Positions 10,085-46,282 of a stretch of DNA of 64,000 nucleotides are shown piece by piece. The position numbers and the translations under genes were made by a program. The stretch's first letter is position 1. Each line of letters starts with the position of its first letter. This DNA comes from Mytilus trossulus. Its lineage: Eukaryota. The stretch covers positions 88,164,001-88,228,000 of the forward strand of contig NC_086375.1 in assembly GCF_036588685.1 (NCBI RefSeq). Reading direction: 5' to 3'. The notes beneath the pieces are model-generated. The model saw only the letters and a list, made by a program, of their open reading frames with translations. It was not told the origin of the DNA and did not search any database.

Positions 10085-11896
10085 ATGCCATATATACTCC
10101 TTTCCATGTCGACCGGTAAATCTGAAAAGTATTCCAAGCATCCGTCATATACTACAGAGGGAAATAGTGAAAACAACAGCGCGTTTCTTAACAATTTTCA
10201 ATGTGAAAACATCGAGCCTAAAAGGAAAATCTCAAAATGTTGTTATGTTTGCATTTTGTCGATTATTTTGAATATAGTATTATTGATAGCCGTGTCTACA
10301 GCAGGGGTAGCTTTGCTTAAATCAAAATCAGACGTTAACAGGCAGAGAATAAAAAAGCCGTCGGAAGATTTCATACTTGTTCCGTGTGAACGAAATCCTA
10401 CAAATGGACCGAGCTTTCAAAATATCCAATACTGCCACAAAACATCGGACCAAGCAGTAAGGAATTTACTAACACTGGTATGTATAACTTATACAAGCAT
10501 TCTTAACATCAGTTTTTACTCTATCAAGTCTTTTAATTAACGTGAACAAGCTAAGGAATCTTCACATGCAAAATTATTTTAACTAAGGATTTGACTTGTT
10601 CAAACTATTCAAAATTTGTGTATTGTGTTTAGCGAATTCTTATTCATTTAGACTGTTGATACATTTACAAAATGAGATCCAACATAATTCAGAAAATCTA
10701 CCGTATATAATAGAGTATTTCGATTTTGATTTTATATCTTTATCTCAGTGTTTTTGTTTTATTTCAGCTGGGTCACATTACCATCGACAGTTTTTTTGTG
10801 CCGCTCTGCCTTGTCGATGCTAAGAGACAATATATACAATATATCATGACGTTTTCTTTATTTTCAGTTTACTACAGAGTACATCGGCCGAAGAAATTTA
10901 AGCGAAGAGCAACTTTATAAAGATGAAAACCGCCCTGTTCTTCGACAAAAACTTGGTGAATTATATTATTTGTGGAAGAATAACGCATCAGGTAAATATA
11001 AACATCAATATGAAGCTGGCTTATTCTTTTCAAAAAATTATTTATTTTTTCACTTTTGTTCAAAATTATTTTGATGTTATTTAACAAAGCTAGTAGCAGA
11101 GGACAGACGTGGACTGAGTGGGACAGGGGCCGGCATCCGCTTATGGAGCTATTCAAATGATGAATTAATAGACTATACCAGTATCACTCCGAACGGTGGT
11201 TCTTCACCTTCAACATGTTAGATTCGTATCGTGAGAACAATCGCTCTCGACCTTTTGCAAGGTCTTAGATGTGGTGTTTGTCCTTCAGCACAACATACAT
11301 GATAACAAAAGTCATATCGATAAAGAAAAAGTAGGGGCAGCACGAAGACCTTATACTTTAGTCCATTAGAATATTATCTGTTTTTTTTTTAACTGAACAT
11401 CGCAACACGTACTCACCAATCGAACAATTAAACAAACGTCTTAAAAACATCATGTACGTATCATGATACTAGTAACTAAGTTGTACAAATGATAATTTGA
11501 ATAAACAATTGTATTGCAGAAGTAACACTGATGACTTCGAAGCACACGAGAGAAGAAAGCCGCCACAACAGCAAAACATCTTTGACAGTACAATCTGATG
11601 GAAGTTATATTATATATGTGTCACTGCAGTATTGTTTCAGAGTAATCAACCAGACATCTGATAATGGTATAGTGTCTTTGAAGATTGTTCGACATGCTGG
11701 AAACAAAAACGATGTATTATTTCACAATGATGTCCATTATAGGAGTGGACTTCTATCTTTTATTCCAGAAAATATCTTACTTCCCGTGAATTTGGCAAAG
11801 GGTGACCAGCTATCCTTGCACGTCACAAATATACCAAATCTTTACGCAATGAAAATTAGCAACGTCTTTGGGTTACAGGAAATCAGACAATACTAG
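10085..11896 (+). CDS. TNF superfamily ligand-like protein 1 (type II membrane protein, ~297 aa; exons 10085-10477, 10868-10991, 11520-11896)
   Basis: Exon 1 has a TM segment (CCYVCILSIILNIVLLIAVSTAGVALL). The GT-AG introns are phase 0 and 1 and join in frame (894 nt). The last exon has THD motifs LTVQSDGSYIIYVSLQY, VNLAKGDQLSLHV and SNVFGLQEI. AATAAA is at 11992-11997. The start codon is uncertain (see findings). Confidence 0.88.
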
Positions 11897-14800
11897 TTCG
11901 GCAATACTTACACACAGTTTGACATAGAACATCCAGATTTGCAGTGGTTCATTTTATACTGAACCTTCCTATAATTGTGCAGAATGTCTGTAATAAACGC
12001 AAAACAATTTGATTCGATATTGTACTACAATGTATATGTCTTTATTTTAGCTTTACGCCTCGGTTGTTACTTTTTGATTGCGGGTTTGGTTTAGCTGCAT
12101 GCCCAAAGTTGTTGTTATTATAAACTCATTGGCAAGCAAACCACATATATAATCTATAATTTTTTTATATATTGATTTACACGAGAGATTTATTTTTTAA
12201 ATGCACGTTTTGTTTTTTAAAATTAATCCTTAGCAATTTTTGTTTTGAATGTTCATTTTCATCGATCCTCACTGCTTGAACTGTTACAAAATGCACGCAT
12301 AATAAGGAGAAAACAATACTCTAATTTCATTTTCATTTGGTTTTGTATATAAGTTCACTTAAATCTCTAATTGGTTGATTAATATGTGTGATATAGGGTT
12401 CGTTTAAACTTATTTCTTTATTGGTCAAAATAGAAATGTTCTTGAAAACCTCTGAATTTCCTTTTATTGCTTACAGATGGTAGTATTCTGCTTTTCTGCT
12501 GTCATTTTCATTGAAACGCTCATCTCTAAATATCTGTCGCTCTCTGCTAGTGATAATAATGATGTCTTAAGATGGAGTCAAACCTCACCATATGTTCGAC
12601 CCTGTATCACTATATCCTGAGGTTGGCAGCCGAACATCTACTCGTCAGCACTCGGCTTCCAGCTCAAATTATCTAGGCATTGCATAACCAGAAAGATGAA
12701 CGGTCTGTTGCTTATCCTAGTAATCCTACTGCTGAAACAGAACGAAAAAGTTTGTCACTGCTTCGGACGATATGAGTATTCTCGTTTGGTTAATCGGAAG
12801 TGTGTGAACGCCGTATATTTTCCGTCATCATCAGTTCACTATCTGGTCACCACAGTCTGAACTCTGTCGGATCGCGTTCGGGATATATTCGGTCGTTTTT
12901 AACCATGCGATAGATTCAAATCGGTTGCAAAAGGCTGTCGTAAAACGCTTCCTGAATGATATCTGATTGTTGTCGTGATTAAATAATTATTTTAACAAAT
13001 TTTAATTAAAGTTTGAATTTATAGCAACGATTCCCATGATTCTTATCATTCTTTCGACAATATTAATCGGGAATGGTGCTGTCATGGCCGGCTGTTAAAA
13101 TCAGCTTAAAGGATGTCACAATTGCAGTGGCAAATATGTGTTGCTTAGTTAGGATTTCTCTTTATAACACAAATAAATCATTTGGTATGATTCGTAATCA
13201 GACTACTATCCACCAAAACTCAACTTCACAGACGTAAATAACTACATGTAACCGTACGGCCTGCAACAACGATTACAAATCAATCCTGTACAGTCGGTTT
13301 TAAATAAAACGAAAAAAACAGAATGGAAAACAGTTACCAACAGAAACCAGAGAATTATAGGCTTCAAATTAGACAGACATGTAACACGTATGACACTTCC
13401 AGGAACAATGGTGTACTAATTTAACTGCAAGTGTTATATTTATTTGTGTCATTGGGTTGTTGTCACATAGAAACTTACCCACCTCTCTTTTAACTCATAA
13501 GTATTTTGTTTGATATAACTATAAGCGATATCCGAGAAATATTAAAAAAATACATATTGCTGGTATATTTATACATAATATTATAAAATCTATAACACAA
13601 GTTCCTTCACGTTTCGGCCATCACGGCCTTCTTCATTGGAATCTAAATAACCATTTCTTTACGCGAATGGAAACCGTACCATAAACAGTTCTACACCAAA
13701 CAACATGAATTATTAATAACAAAATATGTAGTATGGTTGCCATTGAGACAACTGTCCGTCAGAATCAAAATGAAGTAGAAATGAGCAACTATACGACATC
13801 GTAGACCTACAACTTGTACAGCAACCCAAGCGATAATATATATATATCTTTCACTGGGAACTGTACTGCCGATTTTATTCGATTTTAGAAACAATACTTA
13901 GAACATAGTCAACTTCATAGATGTAAATAATTACAGGTAACCTTAGTCTTCTACAATGAGCAAAAAGAAAGAAAGAAAGTTTAGAGAAAATAGACAGTCA
14001 ATAAGCCACCAGTTAAAATCTCTTCATAAAGTTTAACATAATCCAATTCTCTGTTGAAATCTTGATATTTATAATACCAAATAAGTTTGGTTATTGAACT
14101 GACCTGTGGAAGAGAGTTGTATTGAAATACTGTCGAAAATGTATTCATGTGCACTGTAAATGACCAGATTTTACTTGATGTTGCATTTCCATACTATGTT
14201 GGACAAATATGTATTTATTTTAATTAAAATTCTTAATGGGTAAAATAATTCATTTTCAAACTCTTCTGCCCCCTCTACTCTAAAAAAAATATATCAAATG
14301 GATGTACATGTCTGTTGTTCGTTTTCTGAACCAGACACGGAGAATCAAATCAGTGTTCTTAAGTATAGTCCGCTTTAGCTATTAAAAAAATATGCGGTAT
14401 GATTGCCAATGATACAAAAGACCAAATGACGCAGAAATTAACCACTATAGGTCACCATGCGGCCTTCAACAATGAGCCAAGCCCATATCGCATATTCAGC
14501 TACAAAAGGCCCCGAAATGATAAACAAGAAAACTAGCGCCCAAATTTATGTATAAAAACTTGAACGAAAAACAAATATGTAATGCATCGACAAACGACAA
14601 CCACTGAATTACAGGCTCCTGAATTATTGACAGACACATACATGTACATACATAATGTGGCAGAGTTAAACATGTAAGTGGGATCCAAATCAGTTGAAAA
14701 AGAATTAATTAACTCATAAGATGGATTCAAATGGAAATACATCTAACAAAAACACAGAGTTGACGTGGCTGGGTACTTGTATATCCATAGGCAACAACAA

Positions 14801-15559
14801 AAAGACACCAAGTACTGATTGTTTTCTTCATTAGTTGCAATTATTTAAGAGTCGAAAAATGTCCTTACCAATGACAAAATATGCATAGATCATTAAATTA
14901 ATGTGGAAATGCAATATGTTGATTCAATGGTAGCCGACATGTTGTAAATATCTCAGATTTGATATTGCCCTTTGCATTTGATGATTTTTTTTTTCGCAAA
15001 GTGCGATGAATTTTATTTAGTTTTTCAACGCTACCAATCTTGTTTTTTACTATTCAAAACTAAAACGTACGGGGAAAATCGGGGTTCATTGATAATATTT
15101 TTATGTCGTCAAGCAGAATATTTTTCTCTTTATCAAATTGGGAAATATTAAGCAATAAATAATAAAATCACCCATGTATGTCAAGGTTGTTTATTGTATT
15201 TATATATAGCCTTGGCATAATGTACAAATACAATTTTCTGAAAATGTGGTTGACCTATATTCGCTGTAAATTTACACATATAAATATCTTAGGATACGAG
15301 ACAAAAAGAAAATGCTAAACATACATTGTACTAAATGTAGCCACGATACATCAATTCATATTTTATTTTCTGCTAATACACACTTATCAAATCAAATATA
15401 AACGATTCATCGCATGTTAGCGTACATTACAATGATTTCTTTATATCGTATTTGTTTGTAAACATGACCTAAATATAGCTAATATTATGCTGACGTATTG
15501 CGGCAAATATCGATCCATTTATAGATTATGAAAATGGAAGTAGAATTGTACATAGCGCT

Positions 15560-15569
15560 GGGAATTTCT
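15560..15569 (+). promoter_or_regulatory. NF-kB-like site upstream of TNF-like gene 2
   Basis: GGGAATTTCT differs from GGGRNWYYCC at one position and lies ~125 bp upstream of the ATG. A CRE-like TGACGT is at ~15491. Confidence 0.35.
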
Positions 15570-15694
15570 AGTAAACAGACTTAGGTCAACATTTAAAAAT
15601 GATCTAGCCATGGAGTTTATGCATGCTTTATACTAACAGCAGGTGCTTGCTATTTAATTCATTTACACAGTTATAAACGCAGGAATCTTTAAAA

Positions 15695-18600
15695 ATGGAA
15701 TCAGATAATCCTTCGGATAACATGCTTATTAGCAATTCAACCAGTATGACAGATAGTAACAAAACAGACAAGTATACACAGAGGCTGAATAATGTGTTCA
15801 AAGTATCGCTTGTTGTAAACATTTTTCTACTCTGTACGCTCATATTTTTGTTTATTTTCAAAACGTTTGGAAAAAATGACGATGACGACGCTAAAGCTGA
15901 TTATGTTAATATAAAAATGCCGGATTCTGGAGTTTGTTTTCCATGTGATTATCTTGGACCTGATGTTAAAAAGGAGGACACTTTATATGACCACATACAA
16001 ATAACAGAAAACGGACAGAAGCTTTGTTGCATAACAAGTCTCCCAGACATCACAACGCTGATGCGAAAGGTAAATAACCTGTGCAGAAAAAAAGGGGGGG
16101 GGGTATAGAATGTATTTACATAGATGGCTACTAGTAACTCTTATGGTCTCTTATGGTTCTTCTTATATTTTTTTTATTTTGCGGACCCGCAAATTGTCAT
16201 AAAATATCAATAGGTCCTCAGAGCTACATGTTTAGGTCCGTAGCTAAACTTGACATCACTCATTAGTGTGTATGCTTGAAAAGAATCATAAAGATCATTG
16301 CTACTATATTTTTAACATGAACAAATAAAATTACGAGGGTTAAGTTGGTTTTTTTTTCGTTTAACTTCACAAAAAAAAACCCAACACCTTACTACAAACA
16401 AACAAGGATACTATCATGATGAAAATGCTGGAACAATTATTTTTTGTAATATAATATAAGGCCTACACGTATTATTTGTTTTAAGAAAAGTCTGATACAT
16501 AATTACTTAATGTCAGTGTAAATGTACATTATAAGCTTATGAACAAATGCAGATAAAATGTTCACGTTATGTAATTTGACCATTAATTTCACAATACCAT
16601 ACAACAGTGTAGTTTGATTGACGTATCATAGCTGTTAATTCCAAACTGATTCATTGAATTATTAAATATGCATACAATCAATTGTGAAAGAGTGAAGTGT
16701 TATTATCCTGATGCTTTAATTGTGCAAAAATATGAAGATAAAACTACCAAGTTTAGACCCCAATCTAATTATGTGAATAGATCATGGTGATAGCGAAAGG
16801 CAGTAAGTGATACACGATCAAATAGAGGAATATTGCGAAATCGGGGTTGAAAATTATGTCATGATGTAATTTTAGTTATTTATTTATTTTAACATTTTAG
16901 GTTGTTGAACGTCAGTTTCCACCAGGCGAACATGACTACAGTAAGTTTAATATTTCAGTTCTAAAAGAGGGACGAAAGATACCAAAGGGACAGTCAAACT
17001 CGTAAATCTAAAACAAACTGACAACGCCATGGCTAAAAATGAAAAAGACAAACAGAAAAACAATAGTACACATGACACAACATAGAAAACTAAAGAATAA
17101 ACAACACGAACCCTACCAAAACTAGGGGTGATCTCAGGTGCTCCGGAAGGGTAAGCAGATCCTGCTCCACATGCGGCACCCGTCGTGTTGCTTATGTGAT
17201 TACAAATCCGGTAAATAGTCTAATTCTGTAGGTCAAATTCATGAAAGGGAAGGGGATTGTAGTTACGACGTAAGGAACATATCCGATATCATTTGTGAAA
17301 CGGTTATTCTATAACGGTCAACCAACTCGTGATGGCGTTCGTAAAATTTACGAAGGGATGATTTCAACTTCACCATTTGGAACTCTTGGTTTAATAGCTT
17401 CTTTGTGAGTAGTAACCCTCTATCAAGAAAATCATGATAGGAAATGCAAGCACAGGAATATTGTATCTAATATATGTCAGAGTTATCTCGCTTTAAACAG
17501 ATAAATACAAAATTACATTTGAATATCGGAAATGATTATGTTTGGTTTGTCAGACATTGAAGTGAAAGAGAAATCTGTAAATGATTTTGACGATGGAAAT
17601 GTACAATAAATTATTGTTTGCGACACTTTTCCGTTAATTATCGGTCAACCTTTTCTTTACAGACCCAACAAGCTACCCATGGGAATAATATGATGTTCAT
17701 CAAATAAAAGAGTCATCTTCTACTCTATAAAATATGACATATCTGTGCATTTGAATAACAATAACATATATTTATTTTTACAGCTGAAGATTCAAGGGTT
17801 CGGCAATCAATAAAATGGTGGCGGGAGAGACCACATTCAATTCACATGTACCATGACACGACAGGTATGTACATAAATTAATGTTTAACAGTGATTTTGA
17901 AGAAAGAAACACATTTAGCTGGACCAAATTTGTTTTTGATGCGTATTTCATCATTTCTTTATAGTTTCAATTAGAATAAAAATAAAAAAATCACTCCATT
18001 CAATACTATCGTTATTTGTGAGTACAGCACGTCAAACAGAACTTGCAGAAGAAATAACTCTGTTAATTTCATAAAATATATATGGTGAAGAGATTATTAT
18101 GCATATATATGTCATGATATATCAACATCTTGTTACATATTGTGATATACATTAAAATGTCTAATTGTTTGAGTGATGGAGAGGAAAATTCCAAACATAA
18201 ACATTTAGCTGAAAAAATAGTTTGATCCGCTGTATAAAACCTGCCTGTATTAGTATAACGTTATAAGTTAGTAGGCTGTCTCATATTAGGGTTAAATTAA
18301 ATATGTAGACTATCTGTTTGTTATCAGTTAAATTTTCTTTCCTCAGCAAACAATTTAACATGGACTCTGCGAGAGGATGGACTTGGAACAGCCTTCACCA
18401 ATGGAATCCGTGCTGTTGACAACAGATTTGTAGTGCCTAGACATAATCTCGGCGATTCGGCTCTGTACTTCATATACGCAGCTGTTACATTCGACTTTGC
18501 AGACGAGAGTTACTTAAAAGTTGTACCGACAGTATATCATAACATTACTCGCCGCCACCCGAATCTGCCCAAAACAGGAGAAATTTCCATGTTGATGAGC

Positions 18601-18759
18601 AAATATGGTGGATCGGCGGAATCTGATCGAATCCATACCAGCTTCTTATGTGGAACTTTTAAATTACAAAGTGGTTATGAGATCGGTTCATATGTTGACT
18701 CGTTTGAATATGTTAAAAAATCGACATATGCTAGTTATTTTGGTATGTTTAGGTTGTGA
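15695..18759 (+). CDS. TNF superfamily ligand-like protein 2 (type II membrane protein, ~302 aa; exons 15695-16069, 16901-16940, 17784-17864, 18347-18759)
   Basis: It has a TM segment (VSLVVNIFLLCTLIFLFIF) and a Cys stalk (VCFPC..LCC). Canonical GT-AG sites with phases 0,1,1 give a 909-nt open frame. THD motifs are RPHSIHM, LTW, ALYFIYAAVTF, FLCGTFKL and SYFGMFRL*. It is a clear paralog of gene 3. Confidence 0.92.
16960..17468 (-). mobile_element. Penelope-like element 3' fragment in intron 2 of gene 2
   Basis: The minus strand translates as ..ACISYHDFLDRGLLLTKKLLNQEFQMVKLKSSLRKFYERHHELVDRY, typical of the end of Penelope RT. It is followed by a non-coding segment (GGAGCAGGATCTGCTTACCCTTCCGGAGCACCTGAG) that is also seen in diverged form at ~4900-4950. 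Confidence 0.8.
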
Positions 18760-20810: not shown

Positions 20811-21019
20811 CATTTGAACATTTAAGTTGACGAGATGGTACAAATGTACATACTTATATTACACTTTAATGATACCCCTTTCAAATTATACACTGTACAA
20901 TTTACGTTTTTTATCATTTGTCAAAACAGAATCTTATCGACATGTTAATCCAAGGCAAACAAGGTGAATTTCGATTAAAAATAATGTATTAAATGCACCG
21001 AGTTTTAGTTAGGAATTCG

Positions 21020-22495
21020 AAGAGACAATTAAACACGATTACATCCTTCATAACCATACTTTAGAACTAGTAACATCTGCAAAATATCTTGGCGTAACCC
21101 TACAGTCTAACTTAAGGGCATACGATACAGTTTTGAACCTGTATTTACAAGTTCGTGAAAATTTGCATATAGGCTAATTTTTACCTGATGAAATCAAATA
21201 TGTAATAAAAAATATACCTCCATGTGCTACTTTTTGAGTAAAATGAGGTCGAAATTTTGTATATTTGCTCAAAATTCAGATTTGTGGCCGTAATTTCTTT
21301 TTCGAAAGAAAGACATAACTTTTTTGTTATAAAAGATAAACACAAATTGTTTTTTGTTAAATAATCGGTAATTTCTGTATTTTATAAATATTATAAAAAA
21401 TATGCAATTTTTTATTCAGAAATAACTCATATTTATCAAATGTTCATGAATTGAGGAAAAAACGTCATTTTTTACTGCATGTTTATCAAAATTAAAAAAA
21501 ATCCTCTATTTACAGTTTTATAAAATTCGGGTCACATATTTTCCCTGCAAAATGAAACAAAATGCCGTTTTGAAAAATAGGGGTCCATGAACTCGTTTTC
21601 AAATTAAATCAGTTTGAATGATAAAAATCAGTCGAAAAATGCATCTTTTCTCGATATATCACAGTTTGACGTCGCGAAAATAACAAATTACGTTAGCAAC
21701 GTCATTGCCTTCCCTGTAACTGTATCGTATGCCCTTAATTAAAATGGAACATTCACTACAACAACATCGTATCAAATGCAAATAAATCTCTTGGCTTTCT
21801 TAGGCGAAACTTAAAAATTTCTAACTCCAGTATCAAATCCCGTGCTTACCAATCAATAGTGAGACCAAAACTTGAATATGCCTGTAGTCTATGGGATCCA
21901 CACACAGCAGATTATAAAAATAAGCTAGAAATGATACAGAGGCGTGCGGCCCGATATGTATGTAACAATTACCACAACACCAGTAGTGTTACATCCATGT
22001 TAAACGAACTACAATGGCCCTCACTCAGTGAGCGCCGCCTCAAAACCAGACTTATCATGTTCTACAAGGTCATCCATGGACTCATTGCAATCCCATCACT
22101 AGTCCTCATACCATCAGATACTAGAACAAGAAAATTACATACTCAAACATTTCGGCAAATATCCACCTCTAAAGACAGCTACAAATGGTCATTCTTTCCG
22201 CAAACAATCATTCAATGGAACATGTTGCCACAAGTTGTGGTAGCAAGTCAAACCATTGAAATTTACAGAGATCAGTTGACACCAACTGTTCTCCACAACA
22301 TAATTTAATTCTATAAATAACAATGTACATATTTTTTAATCACTTGTTGTTTTTTTTCATGTAAATATCACCAAGTATTCTACTAAGTTAAAGATAAATT
22401 TTTGTTCATATTTTTTAAACATATACTCCGCGCATGCAACAGTTCGTAATCTTCAATAATAATGAAGCTGTAACTGTATATCAGAAAAAGAAGAT
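21020..22495 (+). mobile_element. 3' fragment of a CR1/L2-group LINE, interrupted by a TTAA-targeting DNA element
   Basis: Translation gives LELVTSAKYLGVTLQSNL|KWNIH..NKSLGFLRRNL..VRPKLEYACSLWDPH..LEMIQRRAAR..SFFPQTIIQWNMLP (ORF 21859-22308). An AAG-type tail is at ~22485-22492. Confidence 0.88.
21116..21734. mobile_element. Non-autonomous DNA transposon with TTAA TSD (Kolobok-like)
   Basis: It has a perfect 17-bp TIR, GGGCATACGATACAGTT / AACTGTATCGTATGCCC, with TTAA on both sides. Removing it and the duplicated TTAAs restores the LINE frame SNLKWNIH. Confidence 0.9.
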
Positions 22496-22827
22496 TATAA
22501 ATGGGGAACGAAACAACGTAAACCATGATGTTTATATCCCATCATATAATATTCTCCCGATGTCTCGGATAACCTTTCTTTCCCTATCGATATTTGAACA
22601 TGTAACTTTTGAAAGAAAATATATAAAATCTGCCAATCAGTAAAGTTAATGGACTTTTTGAAAATGATTTTGTGTAATTAAATATTTCGATTAAAAGAGT
22701 TTTTGAATTGTTCTGGTTTGAAACACATATACGTAAAATATTAAGACTAAAGGTCGTTTTTTATAAAATAAATGTGCAAATGAACTTGAAGTTTATTTCT
22801 AAATTTTCCCAATCAGTTAACGCGAAA

Positions 22828-28774: not shown

Positions 28775-31700
28775 ATGACTTTAAATAAGAAATCTTGTCT
28801 TGAAAACAAACTTCGCTGTATACTGACTTCGTCAATTTTTGCCAATTTGTTCATGGCGTTAACTTTAGCGGCAATACTTGTCTATAAAGACAGAATAATT
28901 AAAACAGAAAGTGACCATTCAGGACAGTTAGACTCTTTTAACTTGCCTGCTGATTCTGGTGTGTGTATTCCGTGTGATTATCTTGGAAAGAACATCACAG
29001 CAAAAGACACTCTTTTTGACAGTATAACCAAATCAAAGGATGGTAAACAAAAACTTTGCTGTACCAACAAACCATCGTTCTTACCAAAACTTATTGGGAA
29101 GGTAATATATACTACAAGTCGTAAAAGAATTGGGTTTTGTGAAAACATTCGCTGTTTTAGATAAAAGTAATATGCTGATATTTCAGTGTACATTGAAATG
29201 TTTGTAGTTAATTTAGTTCTTTGATCCTCGCTTTGATCATGCTTTAAGTAATTTAGTCCTTGATGTGGTACATTTTATTATTGTTTTATTTTTAATATCT
29301 ATTATATAGTTATTATAGTTTAGTTGTATTTTGTGTACAATTTAACCAATAAATATTGGTATGATTGCCATTTCGACAACTATGTCCACCGAATACAACT
29401 GACGGTCTTCATGCAGGAAAACAAACAGCCTCTGAGCAAACAGCCAAACAAATATCGTATAGAAAGACATTACAAACTTCATCATTGGTTATCATTTGTT
29501 TTTATATTAGTGTCTAAGATTTAATAATTTGGTCTCGATTGCAAATCATATCTAATTTAATACTCTGGCACCATAATCTGTAGACCTTTGTCATATTTTA
29601 TGGATGTTGGTAGATCGGTTAATAGAATTAAATCTTTTAAATTAATAGCATACAATATTGTTTCTTTGATTTTATAGATGATAATGTCAGAACAAGAAAG
29701 AATGTCAGGTAAGTGTATTGATTCATAAACTATTTTAACACTCCGGAAGCAGATCTCAATCGTCGAGCGATTGTGTGGTTAATGTGCACCTATAATAGCA
29801 TAGGATCAGATTCCCCTATGTTACACGTCATCTAATGAGATGCAGATTTTATAGCTATTCTTATCTCTGAAAACCCGGATGTTGCGGACAAACACTCAGC
29901 ATGATTGTATTACTTTAACTTATAACATGTACAGCAGTAATGCATATCAATTTGTAAAATTGGAAAGTAAACATTTACATTGTGTTTAAATATATTAACA
30001 TATTATAATAACAAATAAATTAACAAAAAATCAAACAAAATGTTAAGTTTAATAGATTTTCAGTGTTTTAAGCGTACTAAATAATATCAATCTTTACAAA
30101 TTTTTCCTTATTCTAATTTTCCTCTTTAGAGAACAGATTTTACTTTATTTTTCATTGTTATATTTTTACCTGCTGGAAATGTAAACAATTATACAGTCCA
30201 TACTATTATTATGAATAAGTTTCACAATAATCCTAGGCCTAATAAAAAGTATTCTCTGATTATTATAATAATCACTAGCAGATTCAATTTTGAAGTAAAT
30301 TATGTGACTCAATAAAACATACTTTTTGCATTCTATTTTTGTGTAGATTTTCGCAGGGAAAGAAAAATTTAACTGAAAATGAATGAATTCTAATCTGAAA
30401 CACAATATAAGAATTAATATTCCAAATATATAATTTTGGTCTAGGTTAAGAGGGTCTTTGAAATATATATATATATATACATGTATACTTTCATAATGAG
30501 TCTTATTGATAAAATTGTACACTCATATATGTCATTTTCTATAAAATGCTTTCCTTTTTGGGCTCTAAAACTATGAATATTCTTCCATGGTAAGTTAAAC
30601 TAGACCGTCTTATAGAAAAAATTTTAAGAGAGTTTGTAGAAAATTTTGTTGCAAAGGGTACTTTTTTCTTTCTTTTTATATATATAGGGAATAATGTTAG
30701 AGGACTTTGTGTGGGTTTCTTTTCAAAGAGTACATTCCATTACTATTTTAAACTAATATTTCAACCAAAAAAGAATATTCTTCGATACTTATTTTTTCTA
30801 TATAGACAACAAGGAATGGCCTTTAAGTGTACATATAATTGTTATATAAACATTCAGAAATATTACTTATTATAAAAGAATGTTAAATCAGTCTTTACTA
30901 AATCATATTTAATTGAAATTATAAAAGAAAAAAATACTATTCCATATTAATTTCCTATAGTAATTGTTTGTTTAATACAGTAACACTACTAGTAGGGGAT
31001 AAGTTTGTCCGCAAGTGAGACGGATTAATCAGTGAGTAGATAAGGTTAACTATAAATAGAACAATCAGATAATCTGAACCTATGCTATTCCTAAAAGTAG
31101 TGTATTATTTACTAGACTGCACTGTACAAAAACAATCACTTGCTATGGAACAAAGATTCTGCTACTTTTGTCAATTGTAATTGAGATGGGTTAATACTTC
31201 TAAACTTTAATGTTACGAACTATGATCAATTACACTATTTGTATTATACGAATAAGATATTTTATTTTTATATTGTCGGGTTCTCCGAAACATATATTCA
31301 CAGTGTGGGAACGGAACTGTACGGTGTTTTAATATTTTGGTCATTCGGGAGACTGTCAAGCGGTGCTCCGACATTCGAAAAATAACAAGTCGATGAATGT
31401 AAGTTTTGATTAACGCAAACATTATAATATTAAGTTTCTGCTTAAAGATTTGGTAACGAAAACATTCTACACAATATAAAAGACCAATCAAATGCTGTAA
31501 GCGACATATACAGCCAGACGTTTTCTAACAAACGGTTAGGCTCCGAGTAAATCGCTCAAAATTCGTCATCAACATCGAAAAAAAGTTAAAAAATAATTCA
31601 AAAGGATATTCATAACTACACCAATTTTTACAATTAAGCCTTTGGTGATATATAGTCTAACCATTCTGAAAGTTCTATAACGATTGTTTCAGTAGAAAAT

Positions 31701-34700
31701 TAAATAAATCAATTTTCTTGATGTTGGTTGATATTATTGACTGTACAATCACTCGCTCGCTGGCTGTATTCTCGCTCGGAGCCTTTCTGTACAATCACTC
31801 GGGCAAAATAATAAAATAGATTGCATATTCAGTTCATTGTTTTCTATTTCTTCACTCAATATTGATGTATTAAATATATAAATAAGAGTGACCATAAATT
31901 CTACTCGTTTTCCAATTAAGTTTCAATCGAGTACACCATTCTAACGCACACGTAGTTTTTCTATACCAGAGACACATAAATCGAAAATCAGTATACAAGA
32001 CAAAAACCAAAACGTAAAGCACACATCATAATAAATATCGATTAAGAATAATAAGCTCGTCACACAAAATTCAGTCAATAAAGTAATTATTTCAAGTATT
32101 CCAATATTTTCCATATAAAAAAATGATGAATTTACTTTCAAGCTTTGGGAATTGATTTCAACTTTGGTCACAATATAAAAAAGCGAGGATTTCCTCTGTT
32201 TTCTGTGACAGCTTATTTACTAATATTATTAATATAACGGCTAGTCCGAGATTAGGTCCCAGCTTGTCTGGCAAAACAGCCGTTGGACGTCAGAGTAATC
32301 TCGGACTATATTACGGCCTGATTATGCACGAACTAATTGTCACTGGACAATAATTAAGTGTAGAATTAATCTTACGACATAAAAGTTTAGTTGAATTGTT
32401 AAGGAATATACATGTAAGATGCATGTAATACTTAAGATTTTTAGTGAAAAGAGTTCGTACAGATTCAAAGATTTAAAGTCGAGCGCTGAAGATCAAAAGT
32501 CCACATCTTAACATTTTAGCTCCAGCGATCGGGATGTAACAAATCCAGTGGTCGACTTTATATCTACACAGTGCACGACTTTGTATCTCAATTGCTTTTA
32601 AATCTTTAGCAGTGTGGATGGATTTGAAATCTGCAGCGCTGGACTTAAAATTAATGGCTCTGGATTTTTTTTAATCTCCAGCGCTTGATTTCAATAACCA
32701 CTCTCAGTAGGAAACAATCCGCAAATTATTGGGATAAAAATTAAACACCATGTTTAAAGTTGATAAGGGAGTTTTTTTTTGTTTTTTTTTCATATCGACG
32801 GGTTGTCTGTTTACTTTTTATTGATAAATTTTGGAACAAGTCTACATATCATATTATATGAACAAGAGGCTGTCACAACGACAGCAAACCGGATTTATTA
32901 ACAATTATTTGTGTCCTGGCAATATCACAAGAACCATTACTGGTGAATGGTGAAAGTGAAAATCGTCCATATCAAATTTGACCTCCATTTTGTCATCAGT
33001 ATCAACATATTAAAATTTGAAAAGCTTAGATTGAATGGTTCATGAGTAAATGCAAAAAAGTGAATGGAAACGCCATTTTATGATCTTTCATGAACCATAA
33101 ATACTGAACGGTAAAAGTCAAAATCAGAGACACATAAATCGAAGTTTATTTTATGTTTTCTCCATTAATAAACAAACAAATTCCAAAATGTACATTCTTT
33201 TATCTTGTGTTTGTATTTGACAGCTAGTTGGTTAATAATAATATAGATCTTACGTGTGTGATCGTGCTCAATTCTGTGAATGTAAATGATAAGGACGTCT
33301 CGATTACTACTTACTTTGGAGTCAATTCAATAATTTTTAGGAACACTACAACTGATGATATTAATATAGATAAATAAAGAAGTTTATCAGGTCAATGTAT
33401 ATATCATAAATATCCTATTGGCTATCAAATATAATCTGAGTTTTTATTTAAAGATATTTGATTTGTAAATTTCCGTTTTCTATACACATTTGTACTAAAA
33501 GCGAGGTTTCTCATGAATACTGTAGCCAAAATCATTACTCTGCTCCCAGGCGACATTACAGAACTGCTCCAAGTGATAATACAGTCGAAAGTTGTTTACC
33601 AACGAGCGACCGTACAGTGAAAAATATTTAGTGACTTCTGTTTTCAAAGATTTAGAACTATTTTCTAGTGTAAACATGATGAAGTTGTATATGATGGAAA
33701 AATATATAAAAATTCTTATTACACAACTTAAAATTTTGTTAAAAAAACCTTGTAAAGTCAGATTTTCAGCTGAATGAAGACAATCATTTGCATAATTTGG
33801 GTCGGAGCTCTTACTTTTATTCCATTTTTTTCCCTGTTTTCTTGCCTCTAGAATATTTTCTGACCCCTGGAATGTTTGAATATTATTGACAGATGCAATA
33901 CTTTTCTCATATGCATTAAAAGTGAGCCCAGAGATAGTAATTATATAAAACACTTAATTTCTCCGTAGCTGAAAATGCTCTCGAATGTCGGAGCTCCGCT
34001 TGACAGTCTCCCGAATGACCAAAACATTAAAACACCGTACAGTTCCGTTCCCACACTGTGATATTTAGATAACCCTAATAGATTAAACATTTAGATCGAT
34101 ATTTATATCAGATATTGGAAAATACATCGAATAACAGGTAGATAATATCTTAAAACAAATGTGTTTCACAGTACAAACTTAAACAGTTACATTTCTTCAT
34201 AAAACAAGCCACTTTTATAATTTAACATTTTATGATTTTGAAAAGAAATAATAGTTGTAAAACAAAAAAGAATATATTAAGTTATTCAATCATCAGTCTG
34301 ATGTTGTCAAACAAAGTATCAACATTTGAGGTAATAGTTATCAGAAGAAAATCATACCATGTAATACTTGTCATATCAATTGTTAGTGTTTTGTTTTTAT
34401 TTACAGAAAGTGTATAATTTGCATTTAATATATTTTTGTTTAGATACTGGAAACATTGAGGATATTTACGAACAACTTAAATGGTGGAGAAATCGACCAA
34501 ACTCAATTCACATGAATCTAGATGTTGACAAATTGAAAGGTTTGTATGATTCTAAGAAATAGCAGAATGGTTTAAAAATCATTTACTTCTTATATCTCAG
34601 TTGTTCTGTATTATTTACCTGCGGAAGTCCGCGATGTAAGCAAATGAACCATTTGAAATAAACAAAAACACTTTAAAAAAACCACAGATAGGAACAAACT

Positions 34701-35553
34701 AATTCATCCCTTGTTGTTGTTAGCAATCAACTGTCTGTTTGACAGTTAAAACTGACCAATAACTTAATTCCTGATCGGCAAAATAATAATTCCGAAATTG
34801 ACAGGTTCGAGTTAAAGCTTGTGGTTTATAAATACGTTAATCAGATAGGAACGCTATCACAAGTGAATATACAGACGTTAGCTAACAAAACATGTCAATG
34901 CAATATGTGAATTTCTAAATCAGATTGAAAATAATAAAATAAAAAAAGTAGTTGTGAACTGCCATGTTACAGTTTCCCTAGAATAAACATGTATCTGGTG
35001 AAGGGCATTCGATCTTGGGGCGGGTGTACATCGGTATTTAGTGCACTGAATCCGTTATTTTTTCGATCTCAATTAAAAAAAAAACACCAAAAGGTGCAAG
35101 TACCAAACTTTATATCCAAATGGACTTTTATTTGGTGTAAATCTGATTTCAGAAGAAAAGAAATTTGTATGGAGAACAGACAAAGACCCTCTCGGGATAT
35201 CATTCAAACATGGAGTAGACATGAACACTACGACTAACAGTATTGTAGTACCAGGTCCACATCGAGCTTTGTATTTCGTCTACGTGGCAATAACTTTTGA
35301 CTTTGGTGACATAGAATCCGTCCCAATATTCTACCATAACGTCACCAAAAGTCATCCACTATTACCTAATACCATAGATACTCTGCTGATGACCAAATAT
35401 GGAGGATCATCGGAATCAAAACGGGTATACACGAGCTTCCTGTGTGGAACTTTCCAGATGCAAGGGAATTTCAATCTGAAAACGGAAGTGTCTTCGTATG
35501 ATTACGTGTCCACGAAAAAGTACGGAAGCTATTTTGGTATGTTCAGATTGTGA
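28775..35553 (+). CDS. TNF superfamily ligand-like protein 3 (type II membrane protein, ~284 aa; exons 28775-29101, 29678-29708, 34444-34539, 35153-35553)
   Basis: It has a TM segment (ILTSSIFANLFMALTLAAILVY) and the stalk DSGVCIPCDYLG..DTLFD..GKQKLCC. GT-AG sites with phases 0,1,1 give an 855-nt frame. THD motifs are KWWRNRPNSIHM, FVW, ALYFVYVAITF, FLCGTF and SYFGMFRL*. TATAAATA is at 28682 and AATAAA at 35925. Confidence 0.92.
31299..34060. mobile_element. Non-autonomous DNA transposon with CACAGTG termini, ~80-bp TIRs and 5-bp TSD ATATT (Transib/RAG-like), in intron 2 of gene 3
   Basis: The left end CACAGTGTGGGAACGGAACTGTACGGTGTTTTAAT..CGACATTCGA is inverted at ~33981-34060. ATATT is present at 31294-31298 and 34061-34065. 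No transposase ORF was seen. Confidence 0.9.
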
Positions 35554-38046: not shown

Positions 38047-38396
38047 GACCCCGTTTACACTGGCAACTCGATCTTAAAAAGACCAGTTCGCGTTCACATT
38101 GCACAAAGCAAAATCGATCGAGATCGATCTTATTTAATCCAGTGCGTTAACACTACAACATGAAAAGAACCGGTCTGACCTTTATTTTCACACCGAAATA
38201 TAGAAACACCTGAAACAAGATCGATTGCGATCGGTCAAAGCGTTTACACCAAAAAAAAAAAGATCGATTCAAATAAGATCGATCTTTTTAAAACCACCTC
38301 TAGAGGTAGACTTTTTAAGTCCGATTGAAGATCGATCTTACCCGTTTACACTAGAACAAATATCGATCTTTTTTTTTGTCAGTGTAAACGGGGTTT
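38047..38396. mobile_element. MITE (PIF/Harbinger-like) with TIR GACCCCGTTTACACTG
   Basis: The ends are GACCCCGTTTACACTG...CAGTGTAAACGGGGTT with TAA flanks. GCGTTTACAC and GATCGAT motifs repeat internally. Confidence 0.8.
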
Positions 38397-38508
38397 TAAG
38401 TTTGATTGGCACACTATGCAACGCTGTCAAACATTCTAGTACTACAGTTGAAACAATAACATACCAACGAGTGATCTTTTAGTGACTTCGAAAAATTCAG
38501 AAATTTTG

Positions 38509-40905: not shown

Positions 40906-41344
40906 TTTTGATTTACTTGAAATTCTATGATAGACACATGTACAGAAAATTATAACTGAATTATAGGAAACGATTCATCTAGCGTATACGTCGATAAAAA
41001 ATCCTTTTGTTTGTTATTATTACTTATAAGACTTGAATGTAAAGTATTCATATAATGAGAAGAGGCCAGATGGGTACTCCAAATCCAGGTATATATGGTC
41101 ATGGGTGGGGTTTACCGAGGGGTTTACACATACACGACGCTGGAATGGTTCCTTTTGTATATGTCAAATATATCAATGGCTTGCAATTTTGTCAAGTAAG
41201 AATGTCAATCGGTAAGCATAGTTATCAACTTTCGATTAGACATCATTCTAAATATACATTCTGTTTGATCCGTCTTAAATTTAAGATACAATGTTATCAG
41301 ATAAAATCTTGAAATCATACTCTGAGAATTATGGTGGCCAGATG

Positions 41345-41535
41345 CGGCCATTTCGTCTTTTCGCGTTTTCTTTCACCTTCACGCGAAATCGAGAAATCGA
41401 GAAATCGGGAAATCGGGAAATCGAGAAATCGAGAAAGCGAAATCGAGAAATCGAGAATTCGGGAAATCGAGAAAGCGAAAACGCGAAATCGAGCAATTAA
41501 GAAAGCAAAAACGCGAAAATGCGAAATCGGGAAAT
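41345..41535. repeat. Low-complexity GAAATCG(A/G) repeat array
   Basis: Tandem GAAATCGA, GAAATCGG and GAAAGCGA units account for ORFs 41291-41500 and 41331-41537. Confidence 0.8.
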
Positions 41536-41544
41536 GAAATAGAT

Positions 41545-42290
41545 ATCTAGAAAATATTTGTCAATGGGTTGATGAACACAAAATGTTAGTTAATGTGTCA
41601 AAAACTAAGACAATGTGTATAATTTCAAAACAAAAACTGTCTGTGATGTGTAATGACACATTAAATGTATCCATTAATGGCCAAAAGATTAATGAAAGTC
41701 ACTGTGAAAAAGTCCTAGGTATTTTTGTTGACAAAACTCTTTCTTGGTATGATTAAATTAATCATGTAATCAAAAAAGTTAATTCTTCATTAGCTTTATT
41801 AAAAAGAATCAAGAAATTCTTGAATCACAATGCACGAATTCTATTTTACAATGCGTATATTCTTTCACATTTGGATTACTGTTGTTCAGTATGGGGAAAC
41901 TGTAACAAGTTTTTAGTTGACAGTTTACTAAAATTGCAAAAAAGGGCAGCTAGAATTATTTTAAACGAACACGATATTCGTAAACCATCCATTGAACTAT
42001 TTAAGGAATCTGGAATTATTCCTGTTACTAAGAGAATATCTTACCACAATCATTATTAATGTATAAATCAAAACACCAACTGGCACCAACATATTTATCA
42101 AATCTTATTGCCTACAAGTAGTAAACAATCGTACAATACTCGACTTTCATCATCGGATAATTTTATTGTCCCTAAATCAAATACAGAATTATACAAATCT
42201 TTTCTTTTAGTGGTCCAAAAGTGTGGAATTCATTGTCCAGTAAAATTAAAAAATCAAAAAGTATACAAGTCATTTTATTTTGAAAAGTGT
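41545..42290 (+). mobile_element. L2/Crack-like LINE 3' fragment (degenerate)
   Basis: Translation gives WVDEHKMLVNVSKTKTM..EKVLGIFVDKTLSW..FYNAYILSHLDYCCSVWG..LQKRAARIIL, with stops and frameshifts. Confidence 0.85.
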
Positions 42291-42326
42291 TAAATTTTTA
42301 AGTTAAGCCACAATGTATACCATAGG

Positions 42327-44345
42327 TTTTAAGGTCTTTCCTCTCCGCGAGAAAAGACCTTATTGTTTTTCTCCTGTTTTTTTTTTCATCCATCATTTGT
42401 TTGACATGGCCTCCCCTCGTTTCTATTGGAGTTATCAAGACCAAATATGGACCATCGGTAGACCTCATTATGAGGTATTACCAGATGAGGCTGTGTAGGA
42501 TTTCATCATCCCCTTTAGAAGTAATCTCCCTTTTATTGTTTTTTTTCGACATGGCCCACCCTCGTTGTTTTTGAAGATATCATGACTTTATTTAGACAAT
42601 AGTTAGATCTCATCATGATGTGTTACCATATGAGGCTGCTAAGGATTTCATCATTCCCTATGTGAGTTATGTCCCCTTGAAGCAATTTCTTTCTTTTACA
42701 TTTTTCTCAAAAAGTATTTAAGATAGAATCCATTTGAAAACGGCAACATGTACAAGACCAGATGCCAATGTTAATTAACATATACACTCATTTTGCTGTT
42801 AACCCTTATAAGGAGTTATTTCCCTTAAAAAAATATACACAATTTTTGAAAAATTGTATCTCGAGAACCGGAAGTCGTAAAGACTTGGGACCTACACCAA
42901 TAATCTTAAGTTCATATGACCTTTAATTTGCACCCAAGGTCAAAGGTCACCGAGTGCAAAAAAAAATTACGCTGCAATTTTAAGCTTCCATATTAAGAAA
43001 ACGATAAGAGTTTGCTGCATACTTACAGCGGATAAAATGTTCCTCTCGACGAGCTCTACAATTTATACACTGAGCTCAAAAGAGTCCGACACTCTGTTCA
43101 AAAGTTACGACGGGATGATTCTTAAAAATATAGTATTGTGTGTATATCTTTTTAAAGTTAACAGATATCAACCTACTATAAACTTAAAAGATGATCAGTA
43201 GTTCAAGACCTTCAATTTGAGGTCAATCTCAGGTCATGATGAAATTTCACCTTGACCTTCACATTATACTATGACCTTGACCTTGTGATATTTAAAAGGT
43301 CAAGTGGTCCTGAGTTGAATGGTGATAGTCCCATGTCTTTACGACTTCCGGTTCTCAAGTTTTGTATTGCATCATATATTTGATGATTAATTGTGACCTT
43401 AGTGAGCTTTAAAATTGTCTTAATTCTTTTTCTATAATGTTGTCCTTTAACTGTAGATCATTTATCATTTAACAGATTTGAGATATCTATTGTCGTTTTA
43501 GAGATAATGCAGTTTTAAGTTTTGCGAGCGGAGGCATGTATTTCTGAATCATCAAGCGCTTACCACTTAAAATGTTTAAGAAATTGAAGAGGTTGACATA
43601 GTTATATGTTTGACCAAATACCAAAAACATTCCATGGAAAAAAACACCAAAAATTCAATTTGAAATTTTCATGTTTTGCATTGACTTTGTAAGTTTCATA
43701 ATTTCTATTTATATAGTTGATATTGCATCATTATTTGCACTTTGTCAAATGGGGTCATCTGATATATCAAATTGAAGGTCTTAATAAACTCTACTTAAAA
43801 ATGAAAATTTGAAACCCCCTTTTCATCCAAGGGAGACGGGTGGGGTCATTTAGTGCAAACATTCAAATTTCTCAGATGGTAAGGTTGTCGCATATCAAAT
43901 GAAAGAACATAAAGCGAACATTTCAAATTTCAAATTGACGTCTCCCAAAAATGAGTTGGATGGGGTCATTGAGTGCAAAAAATAAATGTTCTTTTAAGGA
44001 AGGGTTGTTGTATATCAAATGAAAGGTCATGATGTGTACATTTCAAATAGCAAATTCCTGACCTCCAGAAATTAGTAAGATAGGGTTATTGAGTGCAAAA
44101 ATCAAACTTTCTAGAATATGGCGTTGTCGCATATCAAATGAAAGTTCATATACTCTATGTTACATATATAATAATTCCGATCTCAAAAATGTAGGCGGAT
44201 GAGGTCATTAAGTGATAAAAGTAAAAAGTTTCAGAAGGTATGCTTGTCGTATATCAAACGAAAGGTCGTACAAAGTACATTATGAAAGCATCACTTTTAC
44301 AGGAAAGACCTTTCAATTGTTTTACAAACAATTGAGATACTAGTT
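42327..44345 (+). mobile_element. Helentron-associated (HINE-like) non-autonomous element with internal tandem repeats
   Basis: The 5' end is TTTT+AAGGTCTTTCC with a nearby inverted AAAAGACCTT. The 3' end has the subTIR GGAAAGACCTT followed by the hairpin CAATTGTTTTACAAACAATTG and T-rich sequence. Internal repeat units are ~150 bp (42400-42680) and ~118 bp (43750-44290). Confidence 0.78.
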
Positions 44346-44512
44346 GTTTTTGTTGTTATATTAATTTAGGTCAGTCAGTGGGCCCCCACTTATGAAAATT
44401 CCTGGATCCGCCACTGCACACGTTGAGACCCCCTCGTTTAAATGGTCATCTATTATATACTAGCCGGCCTAAGAAAACTATTCTCTGTGACATGTTTTTA
44501 TTTAAATGAAAT

Positions 44513-44537
44513 GGGTAAATCCTACTATTTATAAATA
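44513..44537 (+). promoter_or_regulatory. Putative promoter of TNF-like gene 4: kB-like site plus TATA box
   Basis: GGGTAAATCC (44513-44522) lies 7 bp upstream of TATAAATA (44530-44537). Further GGAATTT motifs occur on the minus strand at ~44559 and ~44596. Confidence 0.4.
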
Positions 44538-44652
44538 GACACGGATGTACTAGTAATGAAAATTCCTGTGCTCTTTCAGCGAAAACCTAATCAATAGAAA
44601 TTCCAGAATTTAAAAAAAAGTAAATAAACAATACCGATTACATTTTACAAAC

Positions 44653-46282
44653 ATGGATGTATATGCAGACAACGCATTACTTGGGGACACACCATTTGTG
44701 GATAAACAGTTTAATATTCGTAAATCCAATAATTCAAACATTATCAAAATAGGATGTTGTTTAAGTGTATTGATATTTTTCTGCTTGGTAACAATTTTTA
44801 TATTAATTATATTGAATCTCTTGCATATCTCGCCGCTACAGAATGAGCAAGTTAACATTATAACCAAAGAAACACAGTATCATATATTGCTACCGACACA
44901 TGCCACGAATGATACGACTGCAGTGCAAAACGCGAAAAAAGTGCCGTATATTAAAGTACCAACAACAGAATCGGCAGTGTTAATCCTGATGTTTGTAAGT
45001 AAGACTTTATTTTGTTTTTCTTTTTCTCAATATAAATACATTAAATTTGTAAAATAATAAGATACAGAAGGCTTGTGTATAAAAGAAAAGGTCTTGTGTT
45101 ACTAAGATAAAGTAGCGATAATATCAGGATTATGGTTGAGATTCATGTGCTTATCACATCGTGTGTTGTTTTTATAAAGATTTTTTTATGTGTTATTTTT
45201 GTATTTTCGTTTTAATGGTATGATAGACGTTTGGTGGTGTAACATCTTACGAAGTTTATCAGAAATATTTTTGCAATGATTCTTCTCAAGCCGGTGTTAT
45301 GAGCCGTCTTAAACTGCAGTGCGATGTGAGCTTTGTTTAGCTTCGTGTTGAAGGACTCACTGTGACTTTGAGATGAAGAACAGCTTCACAGGCGCTGTTC
45401 CTTCGTTGTGTGTGTTTTGTTGTGTACAATAAAACATACTGATTTCGTGTCATGAATATCTCATACCCACTGTGTTTCTATTTTTATGTCCATATTTCAT
45501 AAATCTTACCCCATACTAGAGAATCAAATATATTACATAAAAAATGGGTTGATTTTTCTTTTTCTCTTTTTTTTTTACAGTATTCAATGTCATGATAAAT
45601 TTTTCGTCAATTTTAAATCATTTAACATTTGGTCATGTCGGTCCATGTCTTTAGATATGTATCTGACATTACGATAGGGTTTTGCCTCATTGACGAAGGC
45701 GGTATGTTGGCCTGAATACACGTCTTTGATCTTTGGTTAATATTTCTATACATAACCAATACACTTTTTCACTTTTATTAGATTTCAGGATATTTTATAA
45801 CACATGAGAATACCACAGACACAAAGGAATCAAACAGGAAGGACAATACATTTCCTATAGCACAGCCAATTCAAATAGTAAAAGGCAGCTATTCATCGAC
45901 AAATGTGTTTATAGATACTGATCCTCCTTTGAAAGCCTCCGGTGGAAATATTTCGACAGGTGTGAGGATATCCTCCGACGGTTTATACTACCTTTACGCC
46001 TGTATACAGATTTCCTGCTATTGTAAGTCAAAAGCAGACGTTACTATTTATGGGATAACTCATTATATTCAAATAAACTCTGGAAATTCGAACAAAACTA
46101 TTGTGGAAAAGACAATACAGATTCCTCATGGCATTGGAGTTTACAAAACGAGTACCATGTTTGTTCCAGTTCAGTTGAAGAAACACGATGTAGTTAGTAT
46201 GCACCTTTCTGACGATACTTACGTTTATAATTCTAGGAAATCTAATGTTATAGGTGTATTCCTGATGTCACAATCACTTTGA
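44653..46282 (+). CDS. TNF superfamily ligand-like protein 4 (type II membrane protein, ~280 aa; exons 44653-44994, 45782-46282)
   Basis: It has a TM segment (GCCLSVLIFFCLVTIFILIILNLL). The donor GTAAGT at 44995 is phase 0 and the acceptor TAG at 45779-45781 is in frame (843 nt). THD motifs are VRISSDGLYYLYACIQI, VQLKKHDVVSMHL and SNVIGVFLM. Confidence 0.85.

Follow-up and report, generated by a model that had tools for sequence, protein, structure and literature searches.

The question raised by this locus is what kind of protein is encoded by four neighbouring and strongly divergent genes of the mussel Mytilus trossulus, and how closely these genes are related to one another. The window analysed here is a stretch of 64,000 nucleotides (nt) of AT-rich eukaryotic DNA (GC content 0.28-0.36), taken from contig NC_086375.1 (positions 88,164,001 to 88,228,000) and located on C3 (94.3 Mb) of the 1.30-Gb M. 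trossulus assembly. Positions given below are those of the window unless they are prefixed with C3. An earlier note, made from the letters of the window, had read the region as a tandem cluster of tumour necrosis factor (TNF) family ligand genes in two subtypes, one bracketing the other. We conclude that the cluster very probably consists of four intact, very divergent TNF superfamily (TNFSF) ligand genes, encoding type II membrane proteins with a jelly-roll TNF homology domain (THD).

The four genes (genes 1 to 4) occupy positions 10085-46282, all on the forward strand and each with introns; the list of open reading frames (ORFs) represents the cluster by eight large pieces, every one on that strand. 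Joining the exons of Table 1 gives coding sequences of 894, 909 and 855 nt for genes 1, 2 and 3 (297, 302 and 284 residues, respectively), and the predicted proteins of the four genes range from 280 to 302 residues. All four reading frames are intact, and each of the nine junctions is of the GT..AG type and in frame, with canonical splice sites and consistent phases. The exon counts of 3, 4, 4 and 2 proposed in the earlier note were borne out by spliced contigs for gene 2 and by collinearity with proteins for genes 4, 1 and 3. Common to all four genes is a phase-0 intron after a hydrophobic patch that closes the first part of the stalk, with donors at 10477 (LLTL), 16069 (LMRK), 29101 (LIGK) and 44994 (ILMF), each followed by GT and each after the residues that the note had named; the shared position suggests descent from one ancestral gene structure. 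The motifs that the note had listed (WWRxRPxSIHM, FLCGTF, SYFGMFRL, SDGxY, PVxLxKxD, SNV[FI]G and a juxtamembrane CC) were likewise all found in the sequence.

For gene 2 the model is proven by reads: the gene is transcribed and spliced. Reads were mapped to 6 kb of the DNA, at gene 2, using four public runs with two organism labels from four studies; the runs carry the guessed label 'RNA?', and their RNA nature is indicated by the spliced contigs. Contigs skip 16070-16900 (three runs), 16941-17783 (three runs) and 17865-18346 (four runs), with GT..AG ends, and a 1119-nt X4 contig covers the entire coding sequence. Depth is 30-170 on the exons and approximately zero in the introns, except at two high-copy repeats (14.4-14.7 and 16.96-17.45 kb). 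These repeats form an observation of their own. At 14400-14700, upstream of the gene, and at 16960-17450, in its second intron right after the 40-nt exon, every one of the four runs reaches contig depths of thousands, loose ends are numerous, and joints link the two places on opposite strands; both look like high-copy transcribed repeats.

The remaining models follow annotated or homologous proteins. Exons were searched singly, not as joined spliced proteins, and full-length comparisons were made through three proteins, P0001, P0046 and P0063. Gene 4 (280 residues) corresponds to NCBI RefSeq LOC134709821 (P0001), with exon 1 matching residues 1-114 and exon 2 residues 115-280, both at 100% identity. 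A gene 4 homologue of 277 residues was called on a 925-nt Logan contig, which can only be spliced mRNA. In gene 1, exon 1 is collinear with residues 2-133 of P0046 from M. galloprovincialis (79% identity), exon 2 is 95% identical both to residues 134-174 of P0046 and to residues 66-106 of P0006, and the junction residue and downstream sequence of exon 3 agree with P0006 and P0046. The M. galloprovincialis protein VDI52013.1 (299 residues) is collinear with all three exons, at 79%, 95% and 91% identity.

All four exons of gene 3 are collinear with P0063, a transcript-derived protein of 278 residues whose sequence cluster has several members of that length on contigs of 1.4-2.0 kb. Identity is 57% for exon 1 (residues 4-106), 65% for exon 3 (residues 118-148) and 78% for exon 4 (residues 149-278), and the THD shares 98% of its residues with the Logan ORF P0005 over the columns kept for the tree. 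Exons 3 and 4 were placed by frame, phase and homology to gene 2, a candidate phase-0 acceptor at 34407 offering an alternative start for exon 3. The 31-nt exon 2 was not found by a similarity search with the exon 2 peptide of gene 2; a splice-signal scan of the 5.3 kb separating exon 1 from exon 3 offered it as the sole candidate whose phases fit and which has both a strong acceptor and a perfect GTAAGT donor, and P0063 has MIMTEKERAE at this position (six of eight residues identical). Taken together, three of the nine junctions that the earlier note had predicted are now confirmed by spliced contigs of four runs on this DNA, and the other six stand on proteins, one (gene 4) on the RefSeq protein and five (genes 1 and 3) on collinear homologues. 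Separately, two gene 3-like ORFs, P0005 and P0007, called on Logan, ENA and JGI contigs, were seen to run past the C-terminal FRL/FRI with a W and approximately 30-45 further residues. Stop loss was rejected as the explanation: the window has TGA at this place, and the extensions most likely stem from a prokaryotic-type ORF call that reads TGA as Trp.

Profile searches place the C-terminal domains in the TNF family. With a gathering cut-off of 23 bits, Pfam PF00229 (TNF) matched the last exons of all four genes above threshold (Table 1), and it also matched full-length relatives, namely the gene 4 homologue P0008 (30.1 bits), the gene 1 orthologue (27.0 bits) and the gene 3 orthologue (39.4 bits). 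The C1q profile PF00386, which the earlier note had set against PF00229, gave no match on the exons at E ≤ 10 and none on the full proteins at E ≤ 1. A profile built from the four domains and run over the whole window in six frames picked out the four THD exons and no further one. When a profile of the gene 1/gene 4 type was searched against the PDB, the 24 best matches were all TNFSF chains, the first being RANKL (E = 3.5e-4), followed by TL1A, LT-alpha, TRAIL, FasL and CD40L.

Fold prediction gave the same answer. AlphaFold2 models cover gene 4 and the gene 3 orthologue P0063. The model of P0063 has a mean predicted local distance difference test score (pLDDT) of 82.4, with 88-97 in the THD, and its Foldseek matches are TNF-alpha, FasL, LIGHT and LT-alpha (E approximately 1e-10, template-modelling score 0.76-0.87, root-mean-square deviation 2.4-3.5 Å). 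For the gene 4 model, the top 50 Foldseek matches in the PDB are all TNF ligands (FasL, E = 1.5e-7; template-modelling scores 0.56-0.73). Three copies of the gene 4 THD gave an interface score of 0.47 against 0.00 for the best control, a prediction that favours a trimer; at least 55% of contacts agree between runs, with a partner pLDDT of at least 55, and the mark applied is reached by 21 of 30 proteins solved as one-chain pairs and by none of 23 solved as single chains. No C1q chain occurs among the listed top Foldseek matches of either model or among the PDB profile matches. Since the fold and profile searches are topped by TNF ligands only, neither a lack of the TNF jelly-roll nor a better match to C1q, which the earlier note had named as fatal to its reading, was found.

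The N-terminal parts fit the same architecture. Exon 1 of each gene encodes one strongly hydrophobic 19-residue window (Kyte-Doolittle mean 1.9-3.3) after a basic tail with three or four Lys/Arg residues, and the models of gene 4 and P0063 lay a long helix over it. The four proteins are thus predicted to have a type II membrane topology, with a single transmembrane helix and no signal peptide. ORFs, PF00229 and hydropathy in this way upheld the arrangement first proposed for the four same-strand genes, with a cytoplasmic tail, a transmembrane helix, a stalk and a C-terminal THD. The juxtamembrane CC of genes 1 and 4 could be acylation sites. By analogy with all characterised TNF ligands, the THDs would form trimers, either on the cell surface or once shed from it; by homology, these trimers would engage cysteine-rich TNF receptors and signal through them, and a cytokine or immune role may be supposed for the four genes. 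Transcripts with TNFR domains, FADD and TRAFs have been reported from M. edulis (PMC3308963).

Table 1. Exons of the four TNF ligand genes (window positions) and two related loci elsewhere on C3.
Feature	Position	Strand	Content	Boundaries, scores and support
Gene 1 exon 1	10085..10477	+	131 residues: tail, juxtamembrane CC, transmembrane helix, stalk cysteines LVPC...YC	LLTL end; phase-0 GT donor
Gene 1 exon 2	10868..10991	+	124 nt; THD start (RPV...YLW)	Acceptor phase 0, donor phase 1
Gene 1 exon 3	11520..11896	+	Remaining THD and stop	PF00229 29.1 bits; acceptor and phase fit
Gene 2 exon 1	15695..16069	+	125 residues: tail, transmembrane helix, four-cysteine stalk module (CFPCDYLG...DTLYD...CC)	LMRK end; phase-0 donor
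Gene 2 exon 2	16901..16940	+	40-nt small stalk exon	Joints 16067/9 to 16899/901 and 16940 to 17784 in X1, X3, X4
Gene 2 exon 3	17784..17864	+	81 nt; WWRERPHSIHM, first THD strand	Joint 17864 to 18347 in all four runs
Gene 2 exon 4	18347..18759	+	Main THD exon and stop	PF00229 38.7 bits; spliced contigs
Gene 3 exon 1	28775..29101	+	109 residues: 15-residue tail, transmembrane helix, four-cysteine stalk module	LIGK end; phase-0 donor
Gene 3 exon 2	29678..29708	+	Inferred 31-nt exon (MIMSEQERMS)	
Gene 3 exon 3	34444..34539	+	96 nt; WWRNRPNSIHM, first THD strand	Phase 1 at both ends, like its gene 2 counterpart; splice sites, frame
Gene 3 exon 4	35153..35553	+	Main THD exon, TGA stop	PF00229 36.7 bits; acceptor
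Gene 4 exon 1	44653..44994	+	114 residues: tail, juxtamembrane CC, transmembrane helix, stalk without cysteines	ILMF end; phase-0 donor
Gene 4 exon 2	45782..46282	+	166 residues and stop: stalk end, entire THD	PF00229 24.4 bits
Gene 4-like THD exon	C3:88619559-88619912		390 kb downstream of the window	Close to M. edulis XP_071165356
Gene 2/3-like gene LOC134712259	C3:69512608-69512994		18.7 Mb upstream	Closest paralogue of gene 3

To place the four genes among their relatives, the four-domain profile was compared with 1.84 billion cluster representatives. Only 42 of these gave a match at E ≤ 1e-3, which sets the four domains apart from generic TNF sequences. Among 29 relatives looked up, every one with an assigned organism is molluscan, in agreement with the earlier view of a lineage-restricted set of genes in an invertebrate. 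They come from Mytilus (M. galloprovincialis, M. edulis, M. coruscus, M. californianus and M. trossulus) and from Pinctada imbricata, Mizuhopecten yessoensis, Argopecten irradians, Saccostrea species and Crassostrea gigas, with one distant protein from Haliotis asinina. Database names for these relatives are 'uncharacterized', 'hypothetical' or the automatic UniProt 'THD domain-containing protein'.

In a maximum-likelihood tree of 46 THDs, genes 2 and 3 fall in one clade with the paralogue at 69.51 Mb on C3 (support 98/95), and within it the group that contains this paralogue is the sister of gene 3 (100/95). A clade made up of genes 2 and 3 alone was marginally rejected (p value of the approximately unbiased test, p-AU, 0.044). 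On this marginal result from the sequences, the two would not be each other's closest kin, gene 3 appearing nearer to a paralogue 18.7 Mb away. Gene 1 lies in a starred clade with two transcript-derived proteins, and gene 4 in a separate starred clade with the 88.62-Mb paralogue and M. edulis proteins; forcing them into a joint clade costs 2.3 log-likelihood units (p-AU 0.25) and is neither supported nor rejected. Last-exon identity is 50% between genes 2 and 3, 24.6% between genes 1 and 4, and 19-26% for pairs across the types.

The division into two subtypes made in the earlier note therefore survives in one half. Genes 2 and 3 do form one clear subfamily, as seen from their clade, their last-exon identity and a common stalk module. 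The pairing of genes 1 and 4 is not supported: it rests on a few motifs, their identity is about that of cross-type pairs, and the tree puts them in separate, well-supported clades; they are two further old lineages. The four genes thus are three old lineages: a mollusc-wide subfamily with genes 2 and 3, gene 1, and gene 4. The gene 1 lineage has so far been seen only in mussels and transcript assemblies, and the gene 4 lineage is another of this kind.

Several observations weigh against the reading as four intact TNF ligand genes. Full-length gene 4 scores 22.1 bits with PF00229, just under the cut-off, which may be why its entry is named 'uncharacterized' and has no precomputed Pfam domain. 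Its AlphaFold2 model, built on a shallow alignment of 16 sequences, is weak overall (mean pLDDT 52.9; THD 58-84). The trimer score of its THD may reflect solved TNF trimers on which the predictor draws. In gene 3, exon 2 is inferred from splice signals and P0063, not from M. trossulus RNA, and a large insertion lies inside an intron. Direct RNA evidence on this DNA belongs to gene 2, and the models of genes 1, 3 and 4 are drawn from annotated or homologous proteins. That the C-terminal domains are instead C1q globular heads has a negligible probability. Proteins that carry a C1q domain (C1qDC) are hugely expanded in Mytilus, with hundreds of C1q transcripts in M. edulis (PMC3308963), their jelly-roll fold is common to C1q and TNF, and the TNF score of gene 4 is borderline. 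Against this stand the lack of any PF00386 match on exons or full proteins within the E-value limits given above, and a PDB profile search and two Foldseek searches topped only by TNF ligands. Bivalve C1qDC proteins are known as secreted proteins, whereas genes 1 to 4 encode predicted type II transmembrane proteins without a signal peptide. The C1q reading is effectively refuted.

Accepting four TNF ligand genes, one may still ask whether all of them are alive and whether their products act together. At least one copy, gene 3 above all, might be a decayed duplicate that is no longer expressed or functional in M. trossulus, the cluster being partly a gene graveyard. We consider this distinctly unlikely, given that none of the four frames is interrupted, that the splice sites are canonical and their phases agree, and that the THD of gene 3 is nearly identical to a Logan ORF and closely similar to the full-length, transcript-derived P0063. 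What speaks for decay is that direct RNA evidence is limited to gene 2, the gene to which reads were mapped, and that a set of 5.8 billion proteins, searched within a length window and by word sampling, held no protein with the WWRNRPNSIHM exon of gene 3 besides paralogues. A word search for annotated full-length proteins of genes 2 and 3 likewise gave only the paralogue LOC134712259 and its relatives; the length window and the word sampling limit both negatives. A different extension of the TNF assignment, already raised in the earlier note, is that clustered paralogues (gene 2 with gene 3, or gene 1 with gene 4) are co-expressed and form heterotrimers in the manner of LT-alpha/LT-beta. The four genes are neighbours with the same orientation, the THD exons of genes 2 and 3 are half identical, and LTa1b2 is a solved precedent among the Foldseek matches (4mxw). 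Adjacency by itself is weak evidence, however, identity between genes 1 and 4 is no more than 25%, and gene 3 is nearer to its distant paralogue than to gene 2. We consider this reading unlikely.

The stalk of genes 2 and 3 contains a feature that extends well beyond Mytilus. The subfamily to which they belong was defined in this analysis and is not a curated one; its marks are a C-x2-C ... CC stalk, WWRxR before strand A, SF(L/V)CG, and a (Y/F)FGxF(K/R)L C-terminus. Both genes carry all of these marks and fall in the 98/95 clade within the group, whose members come from Mytilus, Pinctada, Argopecten, Saccostrea and Crassostrea (including C. gigas LOC105319516 and LOC105341146), together with the distant Haliotis protein. 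In the A3/A4 alignments of 20 sequences of this type, from mussels to oysters and scallops, the four stalk cysteines are near-invariant (at least 90%). Gene 1 keeps part of the module (LVPC...YC) and gene 4 has none. In the P0063 model the module is predicted, at pLDDT 72-81, as a small three-stranded sheet followed by helices, and it matched no known domain in Pfam scans and a feature search.

We tentatively suggest, as a possibility that is on balance doubtful, that ligands of the gene 2/gene 3 type are a mollusc-specific TNFSF class, in which the stalk would be a separately folded, disulfide-bonded mini-domain that locks the trimer covalently or offers a second binding surface, and of which genes 1 and 4 would be derivatives that lost it. 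If this is true, the locus preserves the steps by which a cytokine stalk was remodelled, and it could be a source of mixed trimers. The conserved cysteine module merits structural study.

The wider genomic context bears on the origin of the cluster. In M. galloprovincialis, the orthologue of gene 1 (VDI52013/14) and those of gene 4 (VDI52016-18) lie on one scaffold of 169,916 bp with near-consecutive accessions, which indicates that the arrangement is older than the species split. A six-frame scan of the M. trossulus genome with PF00229 gave a minimum of 18 THD exons. C3 holds 14 of these, five of which form an array at 82.54-82.61 Mb. The family profile added the two C3 loci of Table 1, at 88.62 and 69.51 Mb; in C3:88982000-89032000, THD profiles gave one marginal match only (88992833-88993060, E = 0.002, 13.8 bits). 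The cluster is part of a large TNFSF complement concentrated on C3, and very probably arose by old tandem duplication with at least one dispersal, followed by fast divergence.

Mobile elements were observed around and between the genes. Three consecutive forward-strand ORFs at 945-2801 form a degraded non-long-terminal-repeat retrotransposon, the middle one matching Pfam RVT_1 (49.7 bits). Two mutually similar open frames, also on the forward strand, lie between genes 2 and 3 (21739-22305, ...LEYACSLWDPH...) and between genes 3 and 4 (41538-42290, ...LDYCCSVWGNC...). They have no Pfam match and resemble the part of a long interspersed nuclear element (LINE) ORF2 that follows the reverse transcriptase domain. 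These two frames point to retrotransposon debris filling the intergenic spacers of the cluster. Just upstream of the second LINE-like fragment, at 41291-41540, there is a short tandem coding-like repeat (...NREIEKS(G/R)NREIEKS...), open in several frames on both strands.

Compared with known systems, the four mussel genes share with bivalve C1qDC genes the jelly-roll superfold and expansion by tandem duplication, the latter reported as massive in bivalves (PMC6835236). They differ from them in having no C1q profile match, a membrane-anchored type II topology and TNF ligands as the first matches in fold searches. Vertebrate TNFSF members (TNF-alpha, FasL, TL1A, LIGHT, RANKL and LT-alpha) have the same type II architecture and C-terminal jelly-roll THD and provide the best structural and PDB profile matches; the distribution over exons is also the same, with exon 1 encoding the tail and transmembrane helix and the last exon most of the THD. 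However, the mussel proteins are only 12-22% identical to solved ligands and cannot be assigned as orthologues of any vertebrate member, and none of the vertebrate ligands matched showed the four-cysteine stalk or WWRxR of genes 2 and 3.

New TNFSF genes usually originate by tandem duplication (PMC12843592), and adjacent duplicates on one strand are known from chordate clusters of the LTA/TNF/LTB type and from the tunicate TNFSF-T2/T3 tandems (PMC12843592). The mussel cluster resembles these in layout, but its neighbours are old and deeply diverged (19-26% identity between types) instead of recent duplicates, and a close relative of gene 3 is dispersed 18.7 Mb away. Within molluscs, many divergent, lineage-specific TNF ligands have been described in bivalves, as here. 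Crassostrea gigas has 23 TNFSF genes (Gao et al. 2015, as cited in PMC12843592); for M. edulis, 12 transcripts with a TNF domain are reported, of which eight have a transmembrane segment (PMC3308963); and as many as 27 TNFSF paralogues are reported for one mollusc (bioRxiv 10.1101/2024.07.27.603686). We found no publication naming these Mytilus genes or the cluster, and proteins of their types are already present in public databases. Some of the bivalve TNF repertoire has diverged so far that it scores no better than the Pfam threshold or falls below it, and counts of mollusc TNFSF genes made with profiles are therefore likely to be too low. Because molluscs were already known to have expanded their TNFSF genes in tandem and lineage by lineage, the picture of TNF evolution stays as it is: the cluster is a further example of the bivalve TNF gene expansion already described, to which it adds models, down to the exon, and an assignment to a family for four mussel genes, gene 4 and related mollusc homologues being labelled only 'uncharacterized' or 'hypothetical' in the NCBI/RefSeq entries looked up.

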